This document shows, one piece after another, positions 5,812 through 15,565 of a stretch of 64,000 nucleotides of DNA. The notes under the pieces are model-generated. The model made no database searches, was not told where the DNA came from, and saw nothing but the letters and a program-made list of their open reading frames with translations. The position numbers and the translations under genes are program-made. The first letter of the stretch is position 1, and every line of letters begins with the position of its first letter. Origin of the DNA: Lepidodermella squamata. Its lineage: Eukaryota > Animalia > Gastrotricha. Location of the stretch: positions 3,100,001 to 3,164,000 of the forward strand of contig JBLDXI010000001.1 in assembly GCA_047495785.1 (NCBI GenBank). Direction: 5' to 3'.

Positions 5812-8800
5812 ATGGCAGCCACCGCACCGGCACCAGGCGTTGTTGCCGATGTGGATCACTTGTTTACGACTGTGAGAACAGCCGACATGCCGCAAGACTC
5901 GCCGCTGCCTATCTGCGCCTATGATAAATTCGTTCGCAGCACCGAACAGACCATCACTCCGATCAGGCTCGTCGGCTATGCTAACCAGGGCATTACGTTA
6001 TTCGACCGAAAACCTCCAAACGTAAATAAATGTTTATTTTTTTTTAAGGAGGTGTTTTTAAATTTTAATAATTGTTATTTTTAGGGAGTTTTGGAAGGCT
6101 GGCCGTGGAGTTTCGTGAGTGAAGTCGGCAGTTTCGCCCCGAACCATCCGACATTCAACAACATTTTAGCGGTGACGACGAAGGACGGCAGCAAACCAGC
6201 GCCTGAAGTGCACATTTTTCAAGTTGTTGGCCAGCCGGTAAGCAATTTAAACTAGGTCACACACACGTGTGCATCAGGTCACGTTTTTGTGCTTTTATAG
6301 GCCGATCAACTTGCGAATGTTATTAATGCCATGACGTATCAAGCTCGAGCTTCGTCTGTTAGTCAAGCCCCTCAAGTTGTGCCAGATCCTGTTCCGAGGC
6401 AGACGGTGGCCCAACAGCCGGACCCTGCGCCAAGGCCAACTGTGGTTCAGCCAGCCGAAGCTACGATTTTACCGCCGCCGCCACCACCTCCAGCCGCGAC
6501 AACCCAGCCTTTACTGGAATCTTTAACCCTCAACCAGACCATTAGCCCCCAGACGCGCGCGTCGAGTGGCCGGCGAACGGTTCGTCCAGTTAAAATTCGA
6601 ATTGAGCCAGAGATAGAAACGAGGATTTTCAACAAAACCCTCGACGAAATTGAATTTTTCGCCGACACGCGCCTGCCGCAGTACATGCAAGCCATCGGTG
6701 AGTTGGCGATCCTCGACCGACGCGCCTCAGAGCTTCGCGTGACTGTCGACAACAAAAAGGCGAAGAAAAAGGAGCGGAAAGACGCCAAGGAAGAACTTGA
6801 CCAAATCGAGGCGAGAAAAATTGTTCTGCGCCAATTTATCGAGGCTGTTATTCCGACGCCGGAGGTTTTCGCGCAAATCTTCCAGAAAATTCGCCTCGCC
6901 ATCATTCTGGTCGTCCGACTCAAGCCGTATTTGATGCGATCGCTGCCGCCAGAAACGCCACTGTCATCACTGGTCGACGGGTTAACCATTCGATTTCTGC
7001 TCATTTCAGCCGAGGCAAATCGCATGTACCCGCCGCCGTTCGGCGTCATTAATTCCATTAATCAGCCGCTATTCAACCGCGAAGATATCAAGTTTTTGAA
7101 CTCGGAGATTGAGAAAAAGGGCGCCGATGCTACTGCTTTCCTACAGCAGTTGAACCAATTTTGGCGGATTCCTGTGTAAGTTGCAATTTTCCGATTATTT
7201 TCCGTTAATTTTTGCCTGAATTTTAGCGAAGAATGGCCAGGGGAAATTCCGTTTTACAAACCAGTTTTCCCTCCAGATCCGCCGGTTGAACTTCGCTTTT
7301 TGAACCCTGAGGTTATCCGCCAATGGATTGCCGCTGCTGCCCAGAGGGAACAACAGGCTCTGGCAATTCAGTTAGTTTCAAAATGTTTGCAATTATAAAA
7401 TCAATGTTTTCCCCTATTTTAGAGCTCGCATGGAACCTGCTAATCAGGAAAGATTCCGGCAACAACTGATCGACGAGGGGAAACGTTTGGGAAAAGTCGT
7501 CGATCCGCGTCCAATTGATCGCAGCACTCAGCTTTCAGCCGAACTTGGCGAGTACCTGGAAATCAACGGCGAGGCAAGCGACGTCCTTTTCCGTGTTCGC
7601 AACGTCAATGGCGAGACTGGAAATGTCCCGAAAGTTGTTATTGAGGAGGAACTGCCGCCAGCTAGGGAGCCGTCTCTACCGGAAGAGCCAGAACTTGAGC
7701 CTTTGAACGAGCAGCAGAATGAGGCGTTCAAAGATCAACTGTTGAGGGAAGGGAAGCGTTATGGCGTCGCCATGAGGGATGCTGTGGAAGAGGGTGAGGG
7801 TGGTCTGAGGGTCCAGCCGGGTGAATTGTTGGAAATCATGCGAAATATCGGCACCGATGAGTTGCAGGTACGCAACGCCCGCGGCCGCATAGGAATTATC
7901 GAGGCTGCGGTAATTCATGAAGCAACGGATGATCTATCACCGGCTGGCAGTGTAGTAGGGCGGGGGAGCTGGCGACCGCAGCGGACGCGTACACCGTCGC
8001 CTCCTTCGGTTAAGGAGGAACCGATTCCAGTGTCGCGGAAGAGTAAGCGCATGACGCAGGCGGAGCCGCCGATCGACGTCGCGCAACAGGAAAATGAACA
8101 ACTTCGGCGACAGGTGGAACAGCTAGAGGAACAAGTTAGTTCAATGTAAGTTGAGCTATCTAAAAATTTGGTCTTAATTAACACAATATTTCCTGTTATC
8201 TAGGGGCCAGCCTTCACGACTCGAAGTGTAAGTCCTTTAACATTCGTCTTTGTTACTCTTGAAGTTTTGAAAATCCTACATTCATTACCGCCAAAAAACC
8301 TTGGCCTATCGAATCTCTAAGGTGGTTAAATAAAGACCTTTTGATTAGGGTACCGTTGGATAGCGTGGAGAAAAGGCAATCTGGAAATGGCCCATAATTT
8401 ACCTTTAAATAGTCATCGAAGTTCTTCCGAAAAATATAAATTTTCAAAAGGTTTCCCACATATTTACTCTCTATCTCATGTCCTGGAACTGGTTCACCAA
8501 AGTCACCCAATTTTGGCATGTTTGAGTGCCACACTGAACCCTAGTTAAGGCTGGTTTTTTATTTTAAGGCTGTCTATTTTGCGAGAACAAATTAACTTAT
8601 TTTTCAAGGGAATCCTGTTAACTTCGGATTTATTTTCCACCAAATTTCCAAGCAGTTCCAAGCTTTAAGTTTCCAAGCATAAAACGTTGGGATGAAAAGT
8701 TGGGAAATCTATTTTAAATCTTTACTTCCAGCAAAAGTGAAAAGTTGGAAAAAAATAAAATATTTTCCTTTATTTTTAGTCCGGTTCCGAAGGTTATAAT

Positions 8801-11800
8801 CGAGCCGGCCGTTATCCGAATGAACCCGACAACCCAGGATGCATTCAAGAGGAAGCTCGTGCAACACAACAGCCGCTACGGCATAGTAACTAACGCTCTG
8901 GCTGTCGACGCCACCGGCGAACGGGCGCCCGTGGTTCAAGGCGAAGTTGTCGAGCTGCTGTACGACGTTGGCGAATCGTCGATTCGTATCAAGAACTGCG
9001 ATGGTGAAGCTGCAACCATTCCAATCGCTGCTATTACCGAGGTTTCGCCGCCCCCTGCAGCGCGAGAGACAGTGTAGGAAACTCATAAAAAATCCATTTT
9101 TGCTATAAAATTGAGAATATCAATTCAATTCTAGTGACGCTTCGAAACAGCCCCCGAGAAAATCAAAAGCAAGGTGAGATTTTCTCAATTAATTTTTGAT
9201 TAATTAATTGTTAATTTTTAATTAATTAAATGTAAATTAATTAAAAAATAACATTTTTTAATTTATTTTTAAATCGATTTTTATTTTTCTTCAGTAAGCC
9301 TCGTAGCAGTGAAGCTCCAGTGGAGAAAGCTGAAGAGTAAGTCTAGCAATTGGATTAAATACCGGTTTTTACCACATTTTCTGATCGCCAGGCTTCAGCA
9401 GTCTGGCAAGGGCCCGTCTAAGACCCATCTCAATGAGCAAATTCAAGCCGCTTTCCGCGCCAAACTGCTAGATGAAGGCAGACGGTCCGGCGTTGCGACT
9501 AAAGCTCTTAAAGATGCCAACACTGGTCTATCGGTTGAGCCTGGCGAAACGGTTGAAATTCTCGAGGATATCGGCGAGGGTTACATTCGAGTTGCAAACT
9601 ACGACGATATTGCCGGCGTTGTCGAGCGTAAAGCAATTATTTTCTCATCGGGACAAACCATACGGTCGATTAATAATACTACGAAGAGGTTAGAAAATGA
9701 TAGCTGGGAAAATTCTGATTTTTTTTTAATAATTTTTTAGCATTCCAAGTGAGCTTGAACTCAAGAATCAACAGGAAAATGAGGAGTTGCGGCAGCAATT
9801 GGTTGAGCTTCAGGGCAAATTGCAGGCTCAGAGGGTCGCGGCTAGACGAGGCTCGCGATCTTTGTCTTCAAGGTTAGTTCTTCAATAAATAATTTCGATT
9901 TCAAAATGTAAAATTTTGTTAATTTTTAGCGACAATGACAAGAAAAAGAGTAAGAAAAGCTCGGCTCGTGCGTCAAAGGAAAATTTGATCGAACCTAGGC
10001 TGAGGTGAGACATAAAAATTATGATGAATTTTTTGAATTTTTGATGAAAATTGTAACAGCGCAAGCCGTCAAAATGCTCAGCCACCTTTACCTCCTGTAT
10101 CGGCCACTCCAAGGCCGAGGTAAATTAAATAAAAAAATATTTTTTGAATTTAAAATTGGTGTTAATTTTTCGAATTTTTAGCATGATTCCATTGACGCCT
10201 CAGCAATACCTGGATATCCTAATTCAACGTGGCGATAGGGCTGGGCGTGTTGTCGAACATTTCCGGAAGTCGCGTTCCAACGAACTCGACGTCAATCTGG
10301 GTGAAATTGTTCAAATTGTCAGCCAGACTGCGGATGGCTTGACTCGTGTCATCAACTCCGAAAATAAAGCTGGTTTCATCCCGACGAGAATTATTATCGA
10401 AATACCGACTACAGCTCCAGTTTCAGCGCCTCCTTCAACAAGGTAATAAATTCGAAATTTCAGGAAAAAATCGGAATTTTTATTTAATTTGTTTCTATAT
10501 TTAGGCGTCGCAAGTCTATTTCTCCTTCCTCATCACGCGAATCGTCTCGAGAAACGTAAGTTTTAAATTAATATAATATGATTATTACTTTAATTGGTTT
10601 TTTACGAAATTCAGGCAAAAAAGCCGCCGACGAGGGAAGGAAGAAACTCCGAGCGCTACTCAACCGTGAGTTAAATTTTCAGCGGTCTTTTTAAATCCCG
10701 CCAAAATCGGCCTTTACACTAACGAACCTTCTTTTGAAAAGCTATAATCAAAATTTGTTATAACAATCAGTAAATCTCGAATTTGGCCTGTAATTTTGAA
10801 AACCCTATTTTCTAATTAAATAACCGCGATTTGGCTACTTCAATATTCTGGGAAAACTTTCCTTATCATATCGATTCAAAATCTTAACTATTTAATCTAA
10901 AAAGATGGTTTAAGATGTCCCCACAGCGTGTCCCAAAAGTAACGCAAGCAAAGAAAATGCACAGAAAAGGGTTCAGAATGAGAGAAGTCTCATAGCCAGA
11001 AAAATTTTAGAAAAATTAAAAAAAAAATCACGAGAATAGCAATCTAGTAATTTGGTAATGGGATAAAAAGTCTAGAGAAATTTGGTCCAGCCGGGTAAAA
11101 TGTCGAAAATTACCGAACCAGTTACCATCAGGGTTTTCCAGGTTTTTTCAGTTAAATTTAAAAAAATTACAGTGAAACTCCGATTTCGCGTCCTTTTATT
11201 TTCCGTCTGACAATCCGGGTATGCAAAAGATAAGGGGGTGAAAAATCTTATTTTTCCCCGCAGCATCGAATTGCATGTAAATTGGCCTGGATTATCCGTC
11301 TTTTCGGATTTCCCGCGCGAATTTTCGGCCGGGCCATAAGATGACGCCAAATCGGGGTTTCACTGTAGTTCAAGTTCCTTCAATAAAAAAATTAAAAAAA
11401 TAAATGTGCGACTTCTGGGACACGCTGTTTAAATACCCTATCAAAGTGATCGACCCCCATCCCAAGACTTGCAAACTGGTAAATAATTTATTTTCAATCA
11501 TTTTTAGACGTGCTTTGGTTATCCCTGGCCAACGCAAGGATGAAATCTTAGCCCGAGGCAATCGTGCTGCAACGGTCATCCGCGCCTACCAAGCCGCTGA
11601 TTTCGACGATGTTACAGTCAGCGCCGGCGAAGTTGTCGAAATTTTGACAACCGCCAACGGCTTCGCCCGAGTCGTCACTGCCGAGTCGAAAGTCGGCTAC
11701 ATCCCCGAGTCGATTTTGCACGAAATCCGCACGAGCCGCCGCGCGCCCAGCTCGGAAACCGTCCCCGAATCGCCTGTTCGAAAATCGCCTGATGATGATC

Positions 11801-14800
11801 GATTCGACCGAGCGCAGGAGTCATTCATTCAAAAGGTCAAAATTACGAATGGAGTTTTGTGCCGAGTCGTTAAAGAATACACATCTGCCTCGGTAAAATT
11901 TGCTCATTTTTTTGAGAAAAAAACAAAATTTGCTTTCGATTTTTTTAAGGAGGGATTTTCAGTTCGAAGAGGAGAATTTGTTGAAGTCCACCGCGGCAAG
12001 TCACGAGATGGCATGGAACTTGTGTCCAATTATGAAAGTGCTATGGGATACGTGCCGAGTTACATTCTTTCCGAGCCGATTTCCGGAGGGTATGGCGAAA
12101 TTTGAAATATTCTCGAAAATTTCTCAAAATCTCGCATTAATTCCAGAAAAATCGATGTTGTTGATTCTGCCAAATTGATTCAACCTGAACCAGTTAAGGT
12201 TAAGGAGGAGAAGGTTAAAAAGGCTGAAAAGAAAACTGTGAAAAAGCTGAAGAAAAAGTACGTGAATTTTGGGTGTTTTTCCTGGATTTTTAAACCAATT
12301 TCGTTTCTAGGAATAAGTCGCGCGATCGAAGCTCAAGTTCGAGTTCAAGCTCAAGCTCCAGCAGTTCGGATAGCGAAGATGAGAAGGACAAGAAGAGCAA
12401 GAAGAAAAAGGATCGCTCACGATCGAAATCGACCGATAAGTCAGTTCATTTCTTATCCCATTACAACCTTAATTTAAATATTTAAAAAATCAGGAAAAAG
12501 AAGGAAAAATCCAAGAAACGTGACAAATCCAGCGATAAATCGAGCGGGGACGAAAAGAAGCACGCCAAAAAGGAGCACAAGAAGAAAAAAGTACCGCCAG
12601 TTGACTACGACGATTTCCCGTAATTTTTCATTTTTCATTTCTTCCGAAAAATTCGATTTTTTTTTATTAAAAATTAACAGGGCCCGATGCAACCTGCCTG
12701 AACAGACGAAATTTTTGGAGCTGATTCGCCAAACCGGCGGCAGGTTTTGCCACATTCGCGAGCCTTACGAAGCTCAGTTCGGCAACGAACTCAGCGTCTA
12801 CGCCGGCGAGACGGTTCAGATTTTGAACGAAGAACCCGGCCGCGAGGTTAAACTCGTGCGAGTCGCGGACGGCCGGGCTGGCTATGTCCCGAATAAAAAT
12901 CTGACCGAGCCGATCGGAGGGGCTGCGAATAGCGAGCAGTTGATTTCGCCCTTCTCAGGCGCTGGTAACCTAATGGCAGCGCCGCCTAGAATGCCGCTAG
13001 TGACTAATGGCTACCAATCAGTGCCGACTGGCTACAACCGGCCTCAGGTCCGGCCGCCGATCCCGTTTGGCTCCGGAACTGTTCGGGGCGTCCCGGCTGA
13101 ATTGCGGTACGCGCAACGCCAGCCAGCTGCGATGGACCCGAATTTTCTGGAAACTGTAGCAAGCCGAGGCCGACGGGCGGCGCCGGTTGTCGAGGATTAT
13201 GGAGGTTATGGTCCTAATGTAAGTTATTACTACAGCTACTACTAGAGACGGTAGACAGAAAATTCCACGGACTTTTATGCATTGTGAATTTCGAGTAATG
13301 AAATCGTTATCTATAATGACACGCTTGCTCGAATAATTCTCTCATGAGATTGCTATTTATGATGCTGATTTAAAAATAAAATTGAATAAAGAAAGGCGTG
13401 GAGTTCTCATTGGTCAAAGTAATAAATTAATTTCGATTTTTTTTTACAAAAAAATAATTTTGAAATTTTAATTTTGAAATTCAGGAACTCTCGGTTTTCG
13501 CTGGCGAGGCGGTTGAAATTTTCAGCGAGGAGGGTGATCGCGTTTTTGTGGCCACCCAAGCCGGAGATATGGGCTACATCCCACGGAGCATCCTAGGAGA
13601 GCCTATAGCCACCCAGCTTAAAGAAAGGCAAGTTAAAATCCTGCAAAATGCTTTGCCATTAATTTTAGTTTTTTTCGCAGAAATAATGAATCGAGGGAAA
13701 ATATTGGTGTGGATTTGCGTTCGGACATTGCTCAGGAGGCGAATCGGCGAAATGCTAGGCGCCAGCAGCGCCAGGCGTCCCCGCCACGCCGCGCCCCATC
13801 ACCCGAACCCCGCCGCGCGCCTGCTCGCGAAATATCGGAAGACGAGGAAGCGGCGCCGAGACCGCGAGTTCGCTCACCCCGCCGGCAGGTCGACGAAGTC
13901 GAGAAAGACTACAAAACTGATCCGTAAGTGAAATCAATTTTTAATCATTTTTTTTAGTTTATTAGTCAATTTTTTTCTAGGTTACGCTTGGCTCCGGAAA
14001 CTCAAACTTCTTTCTACCGCGATATTTTACACAACGGATCAAGGTATGGAGCGTCAAGATTATACTTGATGAATGATGAATGCTGACTCGGTCTTAAGTC
14101 GGCGCAACCTAATTTTAACTAATTAATTACTTGATAATTCCTTAAAATTAAAAAATTTAAAATTAATTAATTAACACATTTCAATCATAAATAAATTAGT
14201 TTCGGGGATTATTTCGGTCCGCGAAAAAATTTTCAAATTCAAATTTTGATTGATTCTTAATTTTCTGAGCGTGGGAAAAAATCAATTTTGAAAGCCTTTC
14301 TGATTTTTTAATTTTTCAATTTTTATTTCTTTTAGAGCGTGTGAGGTCGTTCAATTCCGAGAAGCCGAGGAAATGAAAGAATTGACAATTTACGAAAAAG
14401 AAATTCTCGAACTCCTGGACGATTCGCGTAAATGGTGGCACGTGCGCAATGCCGACGGCAAAACCGGCTACGCGCCTAATAATTACCTGCGCCTGCTGGA
14501 AAGCCGCGGCAAGAACCCGCGCGCCGCCGCTTCCCTGCTCACGCCAGCCGATGAGCAGCGCATTCAACCGAAACGGCAACAGGCCGTGCAAAACGCGCCC
14601 CCGCCGCGGCCGTTTCCGACTGAATCGCTAACGGCGGAGAGTCACGCAGCTCGGGGCCATCGTGAAGTCCTACCGCCAGATGTGCACCGTGAGTTGACAG
14701 AGAGTTTGCGCTGGAAACGACTGCCGAAGTTTGCGACCTTAGATCAGAAGCATAAGGATCAACAGCGGCGTTATGTTATTTCGGGTGAAAGTACGCCCGA

Positions 14801-15565
14801 GGAGGTCGCCAGCTGGATGCGTCAAAACAACTTCTCGCCTCAGTAAGTCAAGCAAATCATTACGATTAGGGTGCTTCAAAATTCTTTACGTCATTCATCA
14901 GAAATTTTGAAATTTTTGAATTTAAAAAAATTGAAAATTTTATTTGAAATTTTGAAATTTTCAACAAAAGGACTAAAATTGAGGTTCCGGCAATAAATTT
15001 TTCCGATTCTTTGCGATTTCGACTTTTTCTGTACTTGGTCGATACTGATGCCACCTCGCATTTTTGATTAAGCTACTGGTGGAAACATTTTCAAGACTGC
15101 TAATATCGAAAAATCAATGATCTTAAAATCGATAATCGATATAACTTGGAATCAATTTTAAATTATTTTCCAATTTTTTCCGATTTTTCCAGCAATGAAT
15201 TATTTCGATTTTAAAATCGAAGCCAATGGTGGAATCATTTCCTATATTTTCCTATAATTCCTTTTAATTCACGGTGCCGTTTCGCATGTTTGAACATTTT
15301 TCTAAAATTATTTTATTATAGGGCTATTCAAACGTTTGGAACGTTCAGTGGTAGCGAGTTGATGAATCTGTCGCGGGACGAGTTTATCAGCAACCTCGGT
15401 CCTTACGAGGGCCGAATGCTGTCGAACCTGATCGAGGGCCTGCGCATGAAAGCCGGCTACAGGGACCCTCGAATCGGCGCTAAAGCCGAACTCGACGCTG
15501 TTCTAGCCCTGAAATCCGCCCGCCGAGGCCGCGATGGCGAAACAGAATCGGAATATACCAATTAA
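5812..15565 (+). CDS. EPS8: EPS8-family adaptor/actin regulator (multi-exon): PTB - central EPS8 domain - ~10 SH3-type modules - SAM/PNT effector region
   Basis: PTB motifs DVDHLFTT...NILAVTTKD...PEVHIFQ (exons 5812-6021, 6085-6237, 6301-). Central region IFNKTLDEIEFF...FAQIFQKIR...PLFNREDIKFLN...EEWP..IPFYKPVF. Canonical EPS8 SH3 KELTIYEKEILELLDDSRKWWHVRNADGKTGYAPNNYL (~14373-14490). C-terminal STPEEVASWM...FSGSELMNLSRDEF...EG. Many short introns; some micro-exon boundaries are uncertain. Confidence 0.9.

Follow-up and report, generated by a model that had tools for sequence, protein, structure and literature searches.

A gastrotrich EPS8-family gene with a predicted tandem array of ten helix-SH3 modules

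The window analysed here is a 64-kb stretch of the Lepidodermella squamata genome (G000:C1:3100001-3164000, part of a 121-Mb assembly in 151 contigs, where introns are mostly 50-60 nt long). It contains a predicted single gene on the + strand, at positions 5812-15565, which by its domains is an EPS8-family gene with nine additional SH3-type modules without the tryptophan pair (WW) of the binding groove. At the tips of microvilli and stereocilia, actin is capped and bundled by EPS8 proteins, whose one SH3 domain is central to their signalling role. In this gene, ten modules lie between a PTB/spectrin-like head and a SAM_3 tail; the array is old, and the WW pair is kept in the last module only. 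We favour, as the probable explanation, an EPS8-family gene with a tandem-duplicated array of a helix plus an SH3 domain, whose product would work as a long beaded spacer or scaffold protein.

Alignment of the ten units defines a module of approximately 75 residues, in which an SH3-like core (L.V..GE.VEI...V.N..G..G..P....E) comes after an N-terminal segment (F..xL...G.R), and the positions conserved between units are mostly core positions. The WW pair is present in one of the ten units, unit 10. Units 1-9 have L, E, S, Y, L, F, M/E, K and V, respectively, in place of the first groove tryptophan, and the proline of the 3-10 turn is missing from units 2 and 4. Identity of the other units to unit 6 is only about 13-41%. 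As a non-circular test, a hidden Markov model (HMM) trained solely on ten units from another species (metagenome contig L015, described below) was run against the 2,072 six-frame open reading frames (ORFs) of the window; it found exactly the ten unit positions, with E-values of 5e-15 to 5e-5 for the SH3 part, and no match beyond them on either strand. The earlier note on this DNA had listed a recurring unit, with nine copies devoid of WW and a tenth containing it; the alignment and the HMM confirmed ten units on the + strand covering all the positions it gave, and the alignment confirmed the distribution of WW.

In the modelled protein, the units are acidic to neutral (net charge -7 to 0), whereas the linkers that separate them have net charges of -4 to +22, with eight of the nine positive and many rich in Ser, Thr and Pro. 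The Lys-, Arg-, Ser- and Pro-rich micro-exons that had been noticed between units were recovered as linkers, with canonical sites, in the predicted splice model. Two linker stretches, at 8080-8145 and 9741-9872, are heptad-like and rich in Gln, Glu and Leu, with a weak match to bZIP_1 (14 bits), and could be candidate dimerisation coils.

Pfam scoring, folding and searches were run exon by exon. Units 5 and 6 pass the cutoff of SH3_2 (23.9 and 31.9 bits, respectively; cutoff 21.8), and the exon piece of unit 10 passes that of SH3_1 (23.5 bits; cutoff 22.9). AlphaFold2 modelled unit 6 with a mean predicted local distance difference test (pLDDT) of 87.9, as a helix at residues 6-16 followed by five strands. 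Units 1 and 2, modelled together (7430-7927), gave a pLDDT of 93.4 and a predicted template modelling score of 0.59, with two helix-plus-barrel beads and a less confident linker. Against solved SH3 domains (Foldseek, VIA-align), the unit 6 model showed Z values of 11.0-11.4 and root-mean-square deviations (rmsd) of 1.0-1.5 A over approximately 60 residues; the SH3 of human EPS8 (7tzk_A, 1i0c_B) was joint top among these matches, with a VIA Z of 11.0 to 7tzk_A. The model of units 1-2 matched tandem-SH3 structures in Foldseek and, in addition, the EPS8 SH3 7tzk_A (rmsd 1.5 A, 58 alignment columns). On these models, the degenerate units 1, 2 and 6 are predicted to fold as a helix followed by a five-strand SH3 barrel.

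The assignment to the EPS8 family, made in the earlier note, is supported at both ends of the array. The EPS8 spectrin-like domain (PF22975, EPS8_2nd) was matched at residues 97-281 of the ORF 6331-7176 with 42.1 bits (cutoff 27), and SAM_3 (PF18016) on the last exon with 27.1 bits (cutoff 22.6); both were found again when the genome itself was searched, and SAM_3 has a single match in the whole genome at E<=0.001, which is this gene. Furthermore, in a maximum-likelihood tree, unit 10 clusters with the conventional EPS8 SH3 domains of other animals (support 96/91).

The gene model was obtained by a dynamic-programming search over donors, acceptors and frames, with splicing predicted from sequence. 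Its frame is continuous through every unit, from ATG 5812 to TAA 15563-15565, and no stop codons were found across approximately 6 kb of modelled coding sequence. A first model used GT-AG sites throughout; the final model, with two additional in-frame Lys-rich exons and one GC-AG intron, contains 27 exons and 6,060 coding bases and encodes 2,019 residues, and 20 of its 26 introns are 51-63 nt long. The likely GC-AG intron is 13628-13680 (53 nt; donor AG|GCAAGT, acceptor TTTTTTCGCAG), which would restore a uniform phase-2 pattern; the GT-AG alternative, with the exon starting at 13736, shows weaker sites, and the frame is kept either way. Two introns of the array, 11893-11949 within unit 7 and 13219-13484 within unit 9, are in phase 0 and agree with the earlier description; all its other introns are in phase 2. 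The 57-nt intron of unit 7 is itself in frame and stop-free; its retention would add 19 residues in the RT-loop region and leave the protein unbroken. Positions of the units and exons are shown in Table 1.

Table 1. Predicted features of the EPS8-family gene (positions in the window)
Feature	Position	Strand	Evidence
Putative start ATG 5812 and two PTB-like exons	5812-6021, 6085-6237	+	Splice model; weak Pfam PTB match
Pro-rich stretch and EPS8 spectrin-like domain	exons 6301-7175, 7227-7370	+	Pfam PF22975; own-genome family search
Exon with unit 1, unit 2 and a terminal heptad-like Gln/Glu/Leu stretch	7423-8145	+	Unit alignment; AlphaFold2 model
Exon with unit 3	8780-9073	+	Unit alignment; independent profile E 1.6e-11; no Pfam match
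Exon with unit 4	9392-9688	+	Unit alignment; independent profile E 5.9e-13
Exon with unit 5	10182-10442	+	Pfam SH3_2 23.9 bits (cutoff 21.8); independent profile
Units 6 and 7, with the 57-nt phase-0 intron 11893-11949 within unit 7	11508-12089	+	Pfam SH3_2 31.9 bits; AlphaFold2 of unit 6; splice model
Three Lys/Ser-rich linker exons	12147-12257, 12311-12439, 12494-12619	+	In frame, good splice sites; net charge +22
Unit 8, Pro/Gly-rich linker and unit 9 (266-nt phase-0 intron inside)	12681-13627	+	Unit alignment; orthologue comparison
Arg/Pro/Ser-rich linker exon	13681 (GC-AG) or 13736 (GT-AG) to 13923	+	Splice model
Unit 10: helix exon 13981-14043, then exon with WW SH3 (14337-14510), linker and SAM_3 start	13981-14842	+	Pfam SH3_1, SAM_3; tree
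Last exon: remainder of the SAM_3 (EPS8 C-terminal) domain, stop TAA 15563-15565	15322-15565	+	Pfam PF18016
Unit 1	7430-7654	+	Unit alignment
Unit 2	7700-7927	+	Unit alignment
Unit 3	8820-9044	+	Unit alignment
Unit 4	9426-9647	+	Unit alignment
Unit 5	10183-10407	+	Unit alignment
Unit 6	11509-11730	+	Unit alignment
Unit 7	11794-11892 and 11950-12087	+	Unit alignment
Unit 8	12682-12918	+	Unit alignment
Unit 9	13120-13218 and 13485-13610	+	Unit alignment
Unit 10	13982-14043 and 14336-14510	+	Unit alignment

A relative with the same architecture, which the earlier note had suggested looking for, was found in metagenomes. When 1.84 billion representative proteins were searched with a profile, P0001 (658 residues, six matched stretches) ranked first and P0059 (329 residues, three stretches) was also listed; the two are adjacent on the ENA metagenome contigs L014 and L015. 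These contigs show, in order, a PTB-like ORF, an EPS8_2nd ORF, an ORF with three units, an ORF with six units, and a WW SH3 with the start of SAM_3, that is, ten units collinear with those described here. The six-unit ORF of L015 has one interruption, a 63-nt phase-0 intron in unit 9, whose position matches that of 13219-13484. CDC73 (C1:3084039-3088915) is located approximately 17 kb upstream of the gene on the same strand and is also upstream in the metagenome relative, with 58-92% identity; therefore, L014/L015 is taken as the orthologous locus of a related species. The RhoGEF-BAR gene downstream in the relative has two identical matches in L. squamata, at C1:3357166 and C1:3449724, which points to either a recent segmental duplication or a region duplicated in the assembly.

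Comparison of the units of both species in a 10 x 10 score matrix showed that the diagonal is reciprocal best for units 1, 2, 4, 7, 8 and 10. The diagonal sum was 972, against a permutation mean of 527 (standard deviation 76), and was equalled in none of 200,000 permutations; after removal of the three strongest pairs, the sum was reached in 69 of 200,000. Identity between orthologous units ranges between 27 and 48%, with unit 8 at 48%. The maximum-likelihood tree paired the L. squamata and relative copies of unit 7 (U7-R7, 88/78), unit 8 (U8-R8, 97/92) and unit 10 (U10-R10, 95/87), and showed no resolved pairing and long branches for the others. Between two strain variants of the orthologue, six synonymous and two non-synonymous codon differences were counted. 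Since the same ten units stand in the same order in a second species, the array predates the species split and is maintained. Furthermore, the units share open ORFs in the relative and must be translated together in that species, which is evidence against a set of separate genes or modules used one at a time. For the gene described here, the continuous splice model supports one reading frame through the array.

The architecture was not found elsewhere in the library of 1.84 billion proteins, the unannotated metagenome fragments of the orthologue excepted. An EPS8-type head or tail was absent from the other library proteins listed, and those ranked next were, by Pfam, ordinary multi-SH3 proteins with canonical domains. 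Patterns of unit 8 found no relative in the JGI metagenomes. A literature search for EPS8 with multiple SH3 domains returned nothing relevant, and the L. squamata genome paper (PMC11660948) mentions neither EPS8 nor SH3.

A canonical SH3 scan of the JGI metagenomes gave six loci, each with a single conventional EPS8 helix and SH3; they serve as an outgroup, although on short contigs. Because these conventional EPS8 SH3 domains of other animals carry the preceding helix in single copy, the repeat is the whole ancestral EPS8 module, a helix of approximately 13 residues plus the SH3. The uniform phase-2 introns fit a serial exon duplication of this module.

As judged from sequence, further helix-SH3 genes of this genome form a local family with the one described here. 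The paralogue at C1:2993375-3002100 (L005 3375-7711; L010 1525-2148) combines a PTB-like exon and EPS8_2nd with five helix-SH3 units that lack Trp, and also has a coiled-coil-like stretch; its protein kinase domain starts within the ORF of the fifth unit, and a further unit with a single Trp lies approximately 5 kb on. The two genes are alike in their EPS8-like head and Trp-less helix-SH3 units; however, the paralogue has five units followed by a kinase, and no SAM_3 was seen there in the genome search (E<=0.001). A shorter EPS8-like gene at C1:2818953 has two units, one with WW, and a single ORF on the minus strand at C1:3030615-3031127 (L007 4615-5127) encodes a single-W SH3 followed by one Trp-less helix-SH3 unit. 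In addition, C54:3949557-3953148 (L008 5557-9148) contains two tandem genes; in both, a heptad-like stretch accompanies a weak EPS8_2nd-like piece (17 bits), and a single helix-SH3 unit lies at the end.

The search for a second, conventional EPS8, also proposed in the earlier note, gave a negative result. Genome-wide, EPS8_2nd scores highest (129 bits) on the minus strand at C1:502180-502734 (L009 6180-6734), where a ribosomal protein S16 gene lies immediately downstream. At this locus (C1:502255), neither helix-SH3 nor SAM_3 was detected within approximately 16 kb, and a conventional full EPS8 is therefore not demonstrated in the genome.

The gene shares with EPS8 and EPS8L proteins (human EPS8, C. 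elegans EPS-8) the domain order of putative PTB-like head, spectrin-like domain, WW SH3 and C-terminal SAM_3; its last SH3 groups with the conventional EPS8 SH3, and the unit fold matches solved EPS8 SH3 domains. It departs from them in its ten helix-SH3 modules, where they have one, in the absence of WW from nine of these modules, and in its long, mostly basic linkers. Human EPS8 has 821 residues, and the product predicted here (about 2,019) is roughly 2.5 times longer. Multi-SH3 adaptors such as intersectin, sorbin/CAP, CIN85, Tks4/5, p47phox and STAC likewise have several SH3 domains joined by flexible linkers, and the tandem-SH3 structures of sorbin, STAC3, CRKL and p47phox were those matched by the model of units 1-2. 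However, the SH3 domains of these adaptors score strongly on canonical Pfam models, whereas nine units here lack the WW pair, and among the best 150 multi-SH3 proteins in the 1.84-billion library none shows an EPS8_2nd, PTB or SAM_3 related to those of this gene.

The modelled units also resemble the helically extended SH3 family of ADAP type (hSH3, PF14603), whose founding member is a lipid binder, in the predicted N-terminal helix directly before the barrel. Matches to PF14603 were weak and limited to units 2 and 5, with a best score of 20.6 bits, below the cutoff of 25.7, and membership of this family was rejected on these scores. The helix is an EPS8 trait, because it is also present before conventional EPS8 SH3 domains.

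In the proposed mechanism, the gene would produce one long protein in which acidic-to-neutral SH3 beads are connected through disordered, mostly basic linkers. The last SH3 would retain the normal EPS8 role of binding a partner with a proline motif, and the SAM_3 tail would still bind actin. The nine Trp-less beads and their charged linkers may form an extended, possibly multivalent, spacer or scaffold, which would set the distance or the clustering between the membrane-side head and the end of the actin filament. That such a spacer might serve a specialised actin protrusion, as the earlier note proposed, is conjecture.

Several points weigh against this reading. The functional part draws solely on domain composition and on the knowledge of EPS8 in other animals, and loss of WW is no proof of lost binding. 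The earlier note had taken all the repeats as SH3 modules, and this stands for units 1, 2 and 6 by their AlphaFold2 fold and for units 5 and 6 by Pfam; units 2, 4 and 8 are under the Pfam SH3 cutoff, and units 1, 3, 7 and 9 have no Pfam SH3 match of their own at E<=1, with none over the cutoff in the ORF pieces of the split units 7 and 9. The structure models cover units 1, 2 and 6, and the other six degenerate units align throughout. At the head, the Pfam PTB match on the exon piece 6091-6252 is weak (17 bits, under the cutoff of 27), with the domain split by introns and searched in exon pieces. Some boundaries of linker exons are uncertain (12147-12619 and 13628-13736), and the frame is kept in every alternative. 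Word-index protein searches with the exon of units 1-2 and the exon of unit 8 and the first part of unit 9 found no transcript-derived or annotated relatives, in an index that may omit the records of this genome. Finally, array introns are nearly all in phase 2; therefore, blocks of units could be skipped in frame, and the full-length form may be one isoform of several.

This last point leads to a rather unlikely alternative, in which the units are used as cassettes and alternative splicing yields mostly shorter EPS8 isoforms with one or few modules, as a repertoire of linker lengths or specificities. All unit-bearing exons or exon groups between 7423 and 14842 are multiples of three bases between phase-2 introns, and the intron of unit 7 could be read through, both as expected from such use; however, serial exon duplication would leave the same uniform phase. 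The orthologue has three units in one open ORF and six in another, so that these are necessarily co-translated, and each unit has its own orthologue, which is consistent with all ten being needed. The same unit-by-unit correspondence lends some weight to a different reading, in which the protein is an active multivalent adaptor: each of the nine Trp-less modules would have its own non-canonical ligand (a protein motif, a lipid via the helix, ubiquitin or actin), and the chain would be an assembly platform. Across species, orthologous units are closer than non-orthologous ones, the helix of unit 8 included, which suggests unit-specific constraints, and there are the weak matches to the helically extended SH3 family. 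Nevertheless, the residues conserved between units are mostly at core positions, the first groove Trp is gone in nine of nine units and the 3-10 turn proline in two, and we hold the adaptor reading as a tentative one, less likely than the spacer or scaffold.

A reading of the array as a product of faulty assembly or amplification, as several separate genes in a row or as a pseudogene in decay is highly improbable. In its favour, if this is the published L. squamata assembly, the DNA source was amplified by multiple displacement, and chimeric reads were screened for (PMC11660948). Against it, an array of copies only distantly identical to unit 6 is not a set of recent copies, the modelled coding sequence is free of stops, and synonymous changes exceed non-synonymous ones between the strain variants of the orthologue. 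Moreover, the array is also present in independent metagenome assemblies of another species; an assembly or amplification artefact was rejected on the age of the units and their presence in a second species.

The spacer or scaffold reading may be extended to a bolder proposal, which we consider quite unlikely. Under this proposal, the ten-bead protein would be the sole full EPS8 of gastrotrichs, that is, the only one with the actin-binding tail, and the array of acidic Trp-less beads and mostly basic linkers would have a function of its own, as a molecular ruler or a self-associating, condensate-forming scaffold that sizes an actin structure specific to these animals, with the number of ten held by selection.

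What is new here is an EPS8 whose predicted helix-SH3 module has been multiplied to ten, in an array that a second species shares unit for unit. The gene offers a natural experiment in which the EPS8 SH3 was multiplied tenfold, the groove Trp disappeared from nine copies and the array was kept in two species. The case bears on the fates of SH3 domains released from peptide binding and on the importance of the length of the linker between the membrane head and the actin tail, and, in a phylum for which molecular data are scarce, it may provide an example of exons duplicated in series with a uniform intron phase.

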